A stretch of DNA of 64,000 nucleotides from Octopus sinensis (GCF_006345805.1 NC_043024.1:4712001-4776000); one strand, 5' to 3'. Positions 13,142 to 44,520 are shown, counted from the stretch's first letter. Notes: generated by a model not told the origin, from the letters alone. Translations and numbers: made by a program.

Positions 13142-13486
13142 GAAAGATTTACCACATAAATCACAGTGATATGGTTTCTACCCTGTATAGATATGCTTAT
13201 GTTTAGTTAAGCTACTGTCATCAGAGAATGATTTACCACAAATATCACAGTGATACGGTTTCTCTCCTCTATGGATACGTATATGTCGTATTAAGTTACT
13301 GTCATTAGTGAATGATTTACCACAGATACTACACTTATGTGGCATCTTCCCTGTATGAATACGTTTGTGTTGATTGAATTTACTTTCTTCAAAGAATGAC
13401 TCTTTGCAGATGTCACAGTCATATGATGATTTTCCTAATTCTTCCGACATCTCTTCAAGAAAAATAAAAATCAATCCTTCAAGCAA
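13142..13486 (-). CDS. C2H2 zinc-finger gene C' (partial; 3 fingers, amber stop, then array runs into the assembly gap)
   Basis: ORF 13178-13486 starts [18 protein letters not shown] sits in the linker at 13178-13180, followed by KPYHCDLCGKSF up to the Ns. Confidence 0.75.
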
Positions 13487-15708
13487 CTTTTCAAAAATAT
13501 TTCTTCTCTCACCAAAATTTATGGATATTTTTCTTCCTTTTTGCTTTTATAGTTTATTCCAAACAAATATCACTTCTATTATATTTCTTCTAAATGTGAT
13601 CAATGCCAATATTTAAAACTGTCGCAAATACTCTTTGGAAATCCATCAAAGTATATTTAAAAGAGAAAATTATCTCTTGCACATTTCAGACACAGAAGTA
13701 AAGAAATGCTTTCTCTCTCAGAGGAAATATTTTACTGTAACTCAGGAATGTTTTATAGAAGCAGGATTATACGTTTGTAGAATATCTTTGCAGAGTCTTT
13801 CAAACATGATACATATTGATGATTCTTTAAAAGTAAAAAATACTTTTTAGCCAATTTCATGTGATTTTCTGAAAGAATAGAAAAAATAATATAAGATATC
13901 AAGTATGTTTAAAAGGCAGATATTCAAAAGTGCAAATTTACATTTCTGTTTTCATAAATTGTAGAAGTAATCCTTTATCTGAAGTATTAAATTTATCCCA
14001 TCTCTCTATTTTCAAGAAGTTTATATCACAGACATATCTATCGTAATAACACCTCCTGGACATTGCGTCTGTCCTAGACACACACCAATATACATGTCAA
14101 TGACACTAGATATCTGATGGTTTCACCTGTCATGTGTCGTATTAACACAGCTTTGTTTGATAACATAGACATCACTCCTCCTCTGGCTCCTTGTGAACTG
14201 AAAATGTGAAATTTCCGAGGCCTCTCCCACACACCCCTTTCGCGAGCGCGCATTTTTTTTGTCATATTCGCTAAGAGCAAGTAGTTTTACTCCTCTTACA
14301 CAAATTTGTTTTTTTGACCGGGTTTAACTCTTTAGTTCAACCACATTGCCAATATTTCATAAAAGCCATCGACATAAATGGTCTTCATAAAGAATAATAT
14401 TTCCAAATTTGTTTTGATCGCTAATGAAGAAGAAAAAATTATGAACGAACAACAAACCAAACAAATGCAGCTATGGCGTTTGAGAAGAGTAGTCACTCTT
14501 ATTAAATCCCTTTACAGAATTATGGTTGTCTCCCTTTGAACGTTATCATTCAGATTTGGAGAAAAATGCGTTTTTTTTTTTTGCAAAGACCCTTCAACAA
14601 ATTTAATTTTTTGTATATTCTCATTTCAGTTTCGTAAAACAAATTTATTCGCCAATTTTTTTTCAGACTACCCCCTTATTTGTGCTTCCATTTGGATATT
14701 CATCATCATCATCGTTTAACGTCCGCTTTCCATGCTAGCATGGGTTGGACGGTTCAACTGGGTTCTGGCAAGCCCGAAGGCTGCACCAGGCCAGTCAGAT
14801 ATTATCTTTTGATAAACAAACCTTGTTTTCATTTTGAGTTTCTTGCAATGTTCGGCAAATTCCCAGCTGCAGAATTTCTTTAGAGATTTGTTGTGCAATA
14901 TCATATTTATATAATTTCCATCCTAGAATTTGTGAGAGAGAAAGGCGAGGCACTAAAGAAAAGTATCCCAGTCTGTCAGCAGGGTATCTCGAGAGGAAGA
15001 CAACTTGATGTAATTAGTAGACTAGAGAGGAATCGTTGTGACAAGCTGCATATGCCATTCACTCCAGAAAGTTACAGTTGCCAATTGAATGAGCACCTCT
15101 AAGGTAAGGGAGTTATTTTTCGCAAACTTACTAACTAATAATGATAATAATTGTAATCGAAATGATACTAATAATACGGGGTGGAATTTTGGAAGTTGGC
15201 TGTTTCTTTTAATGAAGACAAACCGACACAAGTTTGCAAACTTTGTTGGCAAGGTTTCCGCCCGTCCTCCCTAAAAAACCACCCTTTTTTCTTTTTCTTT
15301 TTTTACATTTTTTCGACAGAACCCCAACTTTTTCGGCTACAGGGAATACGAATATAGTGGGAATTACAAATAACGCGCGTACGTATCATAGTTGTAAATA
15401 AACAGACACACTAATATATATATATATATATATATATATATATATTCTACCAAATATATACATTTTTATTACTATTTTGGGAGAAAGAGAAAGGCAGAAA
15501 GACAGAGAAAGAATGAGAGAGAGAAAAAGTGAAATAGACACAATCTACTAAATTTATACGTTTTTATTATTTTGCAATTTTCTTAATCATCGGTATATTT
15601 TTATTTTATTTCTAATATTTCTATTATATGTAATAATACTTCTATTATAATTTATTGTTCATTTTAAAATTGATAAAAGGTGTTTTTTTGGTTAAACTAA
15701 AGCGTTAA

Positions 15709-16254
15709 ACCCGGTCAAAAAATGTTTAGCTCTAAGTTCAGAATATTTTCATTTCAATTACCAACAGGTCATCTATTAGTTGACAGCAAGAAGAAGATTA
15801 ACTGCGTTATTTGCATATTCACTCGGAAGGATTATAAATAATCCAATCAAAGAATGTTTCGCTTCACCTAAGTGTGTTTATGTAACTGTATTTCTTGAAA
15901 AGATCTTGAAGAAAAACATGGTACTAACAAGTGAAATTATCTCATAAGGAATGTTTTCTTTAACTTTAAAATATCTTCACTTTTTCCAGAATTTCTTCTC
16001 TTTTTTTTTTGGCGAAATACGTACAAAAACACGGAGTTTATGGTTCATGTGTGAGTGTGTGTTCTTGATAATCATTTAGAACAGGTAGTTTTACACCAAT
16101 TACACTATTTTTTTCTTAGTTTAAAGGCCGTGTACTGAAAATGTCAAATTTCCGAGGCCTCTCCCCCACCCCCCTTTCGCGAGTGCGCATTCATATTCGT
16201 TTAGAGCAAGTTGTTTTACACCTGTTACGCTGTTTTTGTTTTTTTTGACTGGGT
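15709..16254. mobile_element. TTAA-flanked MITE (right-end fragment also at ~14185-14330)
   Basis: TTAA/ACCCGGTCAAAAAA ... TTTTTTGACTGGGT/TTAA. Confidence 0.7.
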
Positions 16255-41929: not shown

Positions 41930-42250
41930 TATATGTATTTGTATATATGGCTCCCATGCAGGTAACATGTAAAAAGTACCATTCGAGCATGATTGATGCT
42001 AGTGCTGCCTGACTTGCACCCATGCCGGTGGCACATACAAAGCTCCTTTCAAGCATGGTCGATGCCAATGCTACCTGACTGGCTCTGTGGCACATAAAAG
42101 GCAACTGCTACACGCTCAAACAGCATCCAGCTGTAGAAATCTTGCCTGATAAGATTGAAACCTTGTTCAGCCTCATGGCTTGCCAATCCTCAGTCAAACC
42201 TCACAACCCATGCCAGCATGGAAGGCAGATGTTAAATGATGATGATGATG
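41930..42250 (+). mobile_element. RTE-family 3'UTR fragment
   Basis: Ends in GCATGGAAGGCAGATGTTAAAT(GAT)n. Confidence 0.7.
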
Positions 42251-43020
42251 AAGGTAGAGAAAGAGCGATATCTATTTTAGCAAACAAAGATACAAGACTG
42301 CAATGAAAACATCAGAAATCTAGTGTCATTAATATGTATATTGGTGTGTGTGTGTGTGTGTGTGGAAGTGTATATATGACAGACTTTATTTACCAGGAGT
42401 TGGTATTATAATAGATGTGTCTACTCTATGATATAAACATTTTGGTAATGCAAAAATTGGATAAATTTAATTGTTCAGATAAAGGATTGCTTCTACAATT
42501 TATGAAAACAGAAATGCCGTAAATTTGGGCTTTTGAATATCTGCCTTTTAAACATACTTGATGCCTTATATTATTTCTTCTGTTCTTTCAGAAAATCACA
42601 TGAAATTGGCTAAAAAGTATTTTTTACTTTTAAAGAATCATCAATATGTATCATGTTTGAAAGACTCTGCAAAGATATTCTACAAACGTATAATCCTGCT
42701 TCTATAAAACATTGCTGAATTACAGTAAAATATTTCCTCTGAGAGAGAAAGCATTTCTTTACTTCTGTGTCTGAAATGTGCAAGAGATAATTTTCTCTTT
42801 TAAATGTACTTTGATGAATTTACAAAGAGTATTTGCGACATTTTTAAATATTGGCAATGATCACATTTAGAAGAAATATAAGAGAAGTGATATTTGTTTG
42901 GAATAAACTATAAAAGCAAAAAGAAGCAAAATATCCATGAATTTTGGTGAGAGGAGAAATATTATTGAAAAGTTGTTGATCTGTACAACTTGAAGGTTCA
43001 GTTTTATTTTTCTTGAAGAG

Positions 43021-44520
43021 ATGTCGGAAGAATTAGGAAAATCACCATATGACTGTGACATCTGCAAAGAGTCATTCTTAGAAGAAAGTAAATTCAATCA
43101 ACACAAACAAATTCATGCAGGGGAACAACCATATCCCTGTGATATCTGTGGTAAATCATTCTCTCGAAGCGATAGCTTAACTAAGCACAAACGTATTCAT
43201 ACAGGAGAGAAACCATATCACTGTGATATCTGTGGTAAATCATTCTCTCATAGCGGTAGCTTAACTCAACACACACGTATTCACACAGGAGAGAAACCAT
43301 ATTCCTGTGATATCTGTGGTACACCATTCTCCCAAAGCGGTAGCTTAACTACTCACAAATGGGTTCATACAGGAGAGAAACCATATCACTGTGATATCTG
43401 TGGTAAATCATTCTCTAATGGCAGTAACTTAACTCAGCACAAAGGTATTCATACAGGGGAGAAACCATATCACTGATATCTGTGGTAAATCATTCTCTCG
43501 TTATCATAGCTTAGCTATTCACATACGTACTCATACAGTGGACAAGCCATATGACTGTGATATCTGTGGTAAATCATTCTATCAAAGTGGTAACTTAACT
43601 AACCACAAACGTGTTCATACAGGAGAGGAATCATATTGTGATATCTGTGGTAAATCATTATCTAGTGGCAGTAGCTTATCGAAACACAAACGTATTCATA
43701 TGGGGAGAAACCATATCACTGTGATGTCTGTGGTAAGTCATTCTCTCAAAGCAGCAGCTTAACCAATCACATACGTATCCATACAGGAGAGAGTCCGTAT
43801 TCTTGTGACATCTGTGGTAAGTCATTCTCTCAGGACAGTGGCTTAACTCAACACAAACGTATCCATACAAAAGAGAAACCATATTCCTGCGATATCTGTG
43901 GAAGATCATTCTCTTATAGCGGTAGCTTAACTACTCACAAATGGATTCATACAGGTGAGAAACCATATTCCTGTGATATCTGTGGTAAATCATTATCTAG
44001 TGACAGTAGCTTAACCAATCACATACGTATCCATACAAAAGAGAAACCATATTCCTGCGATATCTGTGGAAGATCATTCTCTTATAGCGGTAGCTTAACT
44101 ACTCACAAATGGATTCATACATGAGAGAGTCCGTATTCTTGTGATATCTGTGGTAAATCATTCTCTCATAGCGGTAGGTCAACTACTCACAAATGTGTTC
44201 ATACAGGTGAGAAACCATATACCTGTGACATCTGTGGTACATCATTCTCTGAAAGCCGTAGCTTAACTAAACACAAGCATATTCATACAGGGGCGGAACC
44301 ATAACCTTGTAATATCTGTGGTAAATCTTTCTCTCAGAACAGTGGCTTAACTCACCACAACCATATTCATACAGGGTAGAAACCATACCCCTGTGATATC
44401 TATGGTAAGATATTCTCTGGAAACAGTCACTTAACTATACACAAATGCATTCAGACTCAAGAAAAATCAATTCACAGTGATATCTGTGGCAAATCATTTA
44501 CACAAAATCATTTCTGATTT
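43021..44520 (+). pseudogene. Disrupted C2H2 zinc-finger gene H (~17-18 finger repeats; only the first 5 are in the ORF)
   Basis: ORF 43021-43476 ends at a TG deletion. There is a further frameshift near 43700 and stops at ~44121, 44302 and 44377. Confidence 0.85.

Follow-up and report, generated by a model that had tools for sequence, protein, structure and literature searches.

The subject of this analysis is an amber-bearing linker, GGG-TAG-AAA-CCA, that recurs among the zinc-finger genes of one stretch of Octopus sinensis DNA. The window (the whole 64-kilobase (kb) stretch, NC_043024.1:4712001-4776000, within whose arrays all homologs were compared) is AT-rich, with a GC content of ~30-46%, and is a cluster of tandem poly-C2H2 zinc-finger paralogs with a repeat unit of 84 nucleotides (nt). 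Six-frame translation yields 73 strict C2H2 motifs, and chopping in register gives ~87 finger units in eight arrays and fragments, with a mean identity of ~73%. The units follow C-x2-C-x12-H-x3-H, are joined by TGEKP-like linkers and score above the Pfam gathering thresholds; the open reading frame (ORF) of gene B, for example, reaches 378 bits with PF13465 (zf-H2C2_2; cut-off 40) and 269 bits with PF00096 (zf-C2H2; cut-off 25.2). Linkers that match the family consensus number ~65. In ~50 of the ~87 units the Glu of the TGEKP linker is encoded by GAG, a single G>T change away from TAG.

The ATG of the zinc-finger ORFs precedes finger 1 by 11 codons. The family also has its own conserved native stop, which lies at the position of Tyr in the last finger and occupies a single alignment column in 6/6 alignable paralogs. 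It is TAG in B (10888-10890), D/D2 (19775-19777) and E (22427-22429), all on the plus strand, and TAA in F (27812-27814) and H (44553-44555), also on the plus strand, and in J (59222-59224, minus strand). Decayed finger relics lie 3' of the native stop, presumably in the 3' untranslated region (UTR).

The amber-bearing 12-mer, GGGTAGAAACCA, is present in exactly four copies in the window (0 in 100 shuffles), at 10542-10553 (+), 13172-13183 (-), 27633-27644 (+) and 44374-44385 (+); the intact form, GGGGAGAAACCA, has 6 copies. A looser pattern, GGNTARAARCC, scanned on both strands, returns the same four sites and no others. In six-frame translation every TAG takes the place of the TGEKP Glu, codon 24 of the 84-nt C2H2 unit, which bears out the preliminary description of this DNA in its report of the linker from four paralogs. 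The 12-mer differs from the consensus linker by a single base, the T. Its presence at four sites follows from that consensus together with the same single-base change, and it stands far from chance in the shuffles only because the consensus linker is itself repeated ~65 times.

In array B the amber (TAG 10545-10547, +; ...HKRIHSG-stop-KPYH) occupies the linker after finger 14, B.14, and in the partial copy C' (TAG 13180-13178, -; ...HKHIYTG-stop-KPYH) the linker after finger 3, C'.3. The F amber is in F.16 (TAG 27636-27638, +; ...HKRVQIG-stop-KPYP) and the H amber in its positional homolog, H5.8 (TAG 44377-44379, +; ...HNHIHTG-stop-KPYP). These last two lie behind an earlier TAA, as had been claimed: in F it is the linker Tyr codon of F.15 (27561-27563, +), which ends the 429-residue F ORF, and in H the linker Tyr codon of H5.7 (44302-44304, +), related to the former by common descent; in both genes it stands 25 codons upstream of the TAG.

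The four settings are not in the same condition. Gene B (9351-10890, +) has its ATG at 9351 and 17 intact fingers at 9384-10811, followed by a TGA at 10812 that is created by deletion of a TG and by a frame-shifted terminal finger. Apart from its amber, the 17-finger array is intact and has no in-frame stop. Zinc ligands are complete in every finger, the three behind the TAG included, and the units behind the TAG have a ratio of nonsynonymous to synonymous differences (pN/pS) of 0.47-0.49 relative to D and E; on these two grounds the B amber looks recent. C' (13450-13142, -) consists of a start and three fingers, collinear with B.1-B.3 at 85% identity, and is cut 36 nt downstream of its TAG by an assembly gap of exactly 100 N (13042-13141), beyond which the window does not contain the remainder of the array. 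The last His of C'.3 is lost (H>Y). (B, at 9384-10811 on the plus strand, and C', at 13450-13142 on the minus strand, are convergent inverted paralogs ~2.4 kb apart with 5' flanks that are 92% identical, and a transcript reading through both could form a long duplex.)

Gene F (26274-27814, +; ATG 26274) encodes 15 fingers up to its TAA, behind which F.16-F.18 are decayed. The ORF of gene copy H (43021-44555, +) ends at a TG-deletion TGA at 43474; further frameshifts and a TGA at Gly23 of H5.5 (44122-44124) follow, and the tail carries the TAA and TAG as in F. F.16 has lost Cys4 and His21, and H5.9 lacks the same two ligands. The F-H comparison gives a pN/pS of 0.44 for the two units preceding the TAA, and for the two units that follow it the value is 1.01. 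Constraint is thus relaxed around three of the four ambers, those of F, H and C'. Stops, 2-nt deletions and lost ligands, the marks of pseudogenes and truncated paralogs, are found in C', D, H and I and in the tails of F and H. F also contains a higher-order tandem repeat of 336 nt, or four fingers (26381-27677, 88% matches), and H5.3 and H5.5 encode the same finger, H5.5 combining the H5.3 helix with the H5.1 linker; both patterns are signs of recent unequal crossing-over within arrays.

How many mutational events the four ambers represent was judged by nearest-neighbour, tract-length and permutation tests, 84-nt units at ~73% identity being too weak a basis for a tree. F and H are collinear around their TAGs (90.7% over 492 nt), the finger after the amber is 96% identical between them, and they have the same TAA and the same tail; their TAGs accordingly count as one event. 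In a 3'-end alignment of six paralogs the positions opposite the F/H site read GGGGAG (B.16, E.2), GGTGAG (D2.2) and GGAGAG (J.10), which points to GGGG as the starting state of the F/H site. The same alignment places the F/H amber two units downstream of that of B. The B amber, moreover, precedes B.15, a finger that is 90% identical to D.4 (the two have a SxTHSLDIH helix and a TGDK(N/K)YH linker in common), and the linker before D.4, that of D.3 and the nearest homolog of the B.14 linker, is GGG GAG; on this ground the B amber is separate from that of F and H. E.1 was also considered as the positional homolog of B.14: the collinearity of fragment E with B from 10553 onward puts E.1 opposite B.15, but its helix corresponds to that of B.14. 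In the case of C', collinearity with B.1-B.3 makes the B.3 linker, GGG GAC, the positional counterpart; the assignment of C'.3 is less firm, since its helix is unlike that of B.3. For B.14 and C'.3 alike, the best-matching flanks on the left and on the right have GAG, AAG or GAC without exception. The ambers thus count as three independent G>T changes, each most likely from a GGG-GAR linker, with the qualification that the positional homolog in C' reads GGG-GAC; the direction of change is inferred from the homologs with GGG-GAG or GGG-GAC. The preliminary description's statement that the flanking fingers differ among B, C' and F/H agrees with these comparisons, as does its argument that duplication of a single event does not suffice for four sites in three finger contexts.

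The reading favoured here, at a probability of roughly 0.8, is that the ambers are ordinary recurrent nonsense mutations in a zinc-finger cluster that evolves by birth and death, one of them copied by duplication. Young tandem C2H2 paralogs would evolve by duplication, unequal crossing-over and decay. On such a background a recent GAG>TAG change would have cut the B array from 17 to 14 fingers; another GAG>TAG would have struck C' as it degenerated; and a third, in the common ancestor of F and H, would have hit fingers already untranslated behind the TAA and been copied when F and H duplicated. The ambers would then be passive lesions, presumably neutral, that disable or truncate the arrays, and would represent no regulated switch and no transferred element. 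Recurrent nonsense at a codon a single change short of a stop and present in ~50 copies, in paralogs under relaxed constraint, is the simplest cause, and it is missing from the options that had been offered for these linkers.

The window resembles known birth-and-death poly-C2H2 clusters (PMC2865497) in its tandem paralogs, 84-nt units and TGEKP linkers, and likewise in its finger-block duplications, degenerate fingers, frameshifts and premature stops with intact-looking fingers downstream. Zinc-finger (ZNF) genes, human ZNF252 for example, are described as cut short by in-frame stops, with relics of fingers remaining in the 3' UTR (PMC2865497). The hosts differ, a mammal there and an AT-rich non-mammal animal genome here; no KRAB or other effector domain was found in the ORFs of the window; and in the literature consulted the linker Glu codon is not picked out as a place where stops recur. 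A second precedent is parallel mutation at repeated contexts, in which the same base change arises independently at a codon and context that are present dozens of times, as they are in these arrays; a bias toward the GGG context, which is hinted at here, is not part of that precedent.

The same arrays provide a further example of parallel mutation, a recurrent TGTG>TG deletion. In TATCAC-TGT-GAT the loss of one TG (TGTGAT>TGAT) creates an immediate in-frame TGA and shifts the frame of the rest of the array. The deletion is found at 10806-10814 in B (TGA at 10812), 22345-22353 in E (22351), 19441-19449 in D (19447) and 43468-43476 in H1 (43474). B and E have these flanks in common and D and H1 present other finger contexts, so that the four deletions amount to about three independent events. 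Ser7 has likewise changed from TCA to TAA twice, in D.3 and D2.3. A set of 120 annotated poly-ZNF proteins of other animals includes 3 whose C-terminus is H-TG and 5 with a TGEKP-like tail (TGEKP, SGEKP, SGENP, TGENP), which suggests that the linker Glu and Tyr codons are common natural ends of ZNF ORFs.

Recurrence at one codon can also be weighed against chance. When all single-base paths to a stop are enumerated across the units, the linker Glu codon contributes 5-6% of them, and in simulations that assume 8-12 independent stops at least three stops coincide at some codon position in 22-67% of runs.

Several observations pull away from ordinary decay. If the Glu codon had been named beforehand, at least three stops there would have P = 0.5-3%. 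The three independent events all follow GGG and none follows GGA, GGT or GGC (3 against 11 intact GGG-GAR linkers, versus 0/34 for GG[ACT]-GAR; Fisher p ~0.02). The C>A/G>T class accounts for 6 of ~10-11 independent stop-creating events but for only 17-22% of the available paths (P = 0.003-0.02, post hoc). Upstream of its TAG, B is free of any other lesion, and the marks of a pseudogene are missing there. Finally, with 84-nt units at 73% identity, conversion tracts shorter than ~20 nt could not be seen.

The second and third of these points are what a mutational hotspot would produce. The last G of the GGGG formed by Gly GGG and Glu GAG would be hypermutable, toward T and perhaps toward A; such a hotspot is rather unlikely, and it would modify, not replace, the explanation by ordinary decay. 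In addition to the restriction of TAG to GGG linkers and the excess of C>A/G>T-class nonsense, a change of Glu to Lys at the same base (GGG-AAG) is seen four times, three of them independent, and once after GGA. On the other hand, the numbers are very small, and the choice of context was post hoc. The G>T change at column 70 is found in 4 copies, and other conserved G or C columns have C>A-class changes in 1-8 copies. Judged by polarised singletons in the paralogous flanks, C>A/G>T changes are comparatively slow (9.4 per 1000 site-copies; C>T, 30.8), and in conserved columns of the arrays the C>A class stands at 23.7 and the T>A class at 23.6 per 1000 site-copies. The excess of C>A/G>T stops is without a matching bias in the general substitution spectrum of the arrays. 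In the oxidation of guanine runs it is the 5' and middle guanines that react, whereas the base changed here is the 3' one, and this also counts against a hotspot. A G>T hotspot in GGGG had been proposed for these linkers: the association with GGG is weak in the window (p ~0.02), and neither the column count nor the flank rate is elevated. Some bias of context or mutation class is possible.

Spread of a single TAG linker among fingers and paralogs by short-tract gene conversion or unequal crossing-over is quite improbable. The arrays do recombine, as the 336-nt repeat of F and the composite unit H5.5 attest, all four sites have the full 12-mer in common, and the B.14 and C'.3 units are 86% identical, at about the 95th percentile. 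The 12-mer, however, is the family consensus and adds no information of its own, and the nearest relatives of the flanks have GAG, AAG or GAC at the Glu codon. Identical tracts that span the TAG are 12-16 nt long, even for the homologous F/H pair, and remain within background (between arrays, pairs of GGG-GAG linkers have identical tracts with a median of 7 nt and a 90th percentile of 18). Without the 12-mer, identity among the three independent sites over the surrounding 75 nt is 75-76%, as against a mean of 74% for random triples from different arrays (P = 0.43-0.50). No linked variants beyond the 12-mer were found among the TAG linkers, tracts under ~20 nt being below resolution. The suggestion that finger-level conversion had spread the amber therefore loses its footing: tract lengths are those of background and flanks are like random triples.

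Very improbable, too, is a variant genetic code in which TAG is read as Glu, or an error of the assembly consensus at the T. TAG does stand exactly where Glu is expected, and C' abuts an assembly gap. Against a variant code, all three kinds of stop occur at varied conserved residues (Ser7 TAA at 18961-18963 in D.3 and 19631-19633 in D2.3, Gly23 TGA, Cys4 TGA, Tyr27 TAA or TAG), they co-occur with frameshifts and loss of ligands, and TAG or TAA at one aligned position ends 6/6 alignable paralogs, as a terminator would. Reassignment of TAG to Glu was rejected on the conserved terminator in six paralogs and on the three kinds of stop together with the frameshifts. The same T in F and H, separate copies that are ~9% diverged, argues against a random consensus error at that site.

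Scarcely any weight is given to a conditional stop confined to B, which would toggle a protein between 14 and 17 fingers, with GGG-TAG recurring because it is favoured or through a lineage-specific G>T bias in GGGG. Least credible of all is a conditional stop retained at the four sites, at which UAG would be read through, or edited from adenosine to inosine (A-to-I) and so decoded as UGG, giving short and long forms of the array: the three B fingers behind the TAG do keep all their ligands and, with pN/pS of 0.47-0.49, were constrained for most of their history, and the TAG is kept in both F and H, but the F/H TAG follows a TAA and stands among fingers in which Cys and His ligands are missing and pN/pS is ~1, its retention is what neutral sequence would show at ~10% divergence, the finger that adjoins the C' TAG is already broken, the downstream frame of B ends three fingers on in any event, at the 2-nt deletion common to B and E, and local RNA folds reveal no TAG-specific duplex (z of -2.4, -1.6, +1.0 and -0.2 at the TAG sites; -0.1 and -2.6 at GAG control linkers). 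Known A-to-I recoding of stops is similar only in that the codon is UAG and formally editable to Trp; it differs in that the local folds here show no site-specific duplex and that three of the four copies lie in sequence already disabled.

The remaining members of the cluster fit into the same family. Array D/D2 (18775-19777, +) contains the two Ser7 TAA stops and the TG-deletion TGA. Fragment E (22099-22429, +) is a copy of a 3' end, related to B at 88% over 640 nt and with the TG deletion in common. Fragment I (47037-47372, +) has four finger units, with TGA at Cys4 of I.3, and the recognition helix of I.2 is identical to that of C'.3, but its linker is an intact GGT GAG. Gene J (60259-59219, -) has a 345-residue ORF of 12 fingers that ends at the native TAA and is free of the amber linker. 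The paralogs have ~400-750 nt of 5' flank in common, at 88-97% identity, whereas their finger arrays are only ~80-83% identical. These flanks lie at 8684-9467, 18075-18858, 25607-26390 and 42354-43137 on the plus strand and at 14117-13334 and 60926-60143 on the minus strand; two orphan copies of the 5' flank, at 2415-2628 and 55066-54806 (-), have no array.

Relatives beyond the window are distant. The N-terminus of the family with its first two fingers has none in the protein collection that was searched, and B fingers 1-14 match only generic poly-ZNF proteins there, mostly of vertebrates and at no more than 61% identity. KRAB (PF01352) is absent among the best 25 of 43 Pfam families for the B ORF, upstream exons not having been searched exhaustively. 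Look-ups of the exact products of the B ORF and of one retroelement ORF, two metagenome pattern scans and a full-text literature search for CDICGKSF gave no match, nor did scans of the window for Rfam families and tRNAs.

Between the zinc-finger genes are retroelement fragments, at 34296-36463 (+), 40870-42036 (-) and 4992-6239 (+), from which single ORFs were examined. One of these has reverse transcriptase and RNase H domains of the long terminal repeat type. One has an RVT_1 domain, and its matches in the protein search often pair RVT_1 with PHD-type domains; a 415-residue ORF has a CCHC-like motif and no Pfam match. The protein matches of the reverse-transcriptase ORF are 48-63% identical, and the one named match, from the gastropod Elysia chlorotica, is at 52%. 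A GC-richer block at 38-42 kb contains a GC-rich tandem repeat (39410-39734; 61/119-nt period, ~5 copies) and a TG/CA-rich stretch of low complexity (38426-38836).

The importance of these findings is small beyond the annotation of the cluster, in which B (14 fingers to the amber), F (15) and J (12) are the copies still able to encode long arrays and C', D, E, H and I are broken or partial copies. In tandem-repeat genes generally, the same lesion in several copies is to be expected from parallel mutation and duplication, and identical lesions are no evidence of transfer or of function unless linked flanking variants accompany them. If the signals of GGG context and G>T class held genome-wide, they would indicate a mutational bias that shortens finger arrays, which would be of modest interest.

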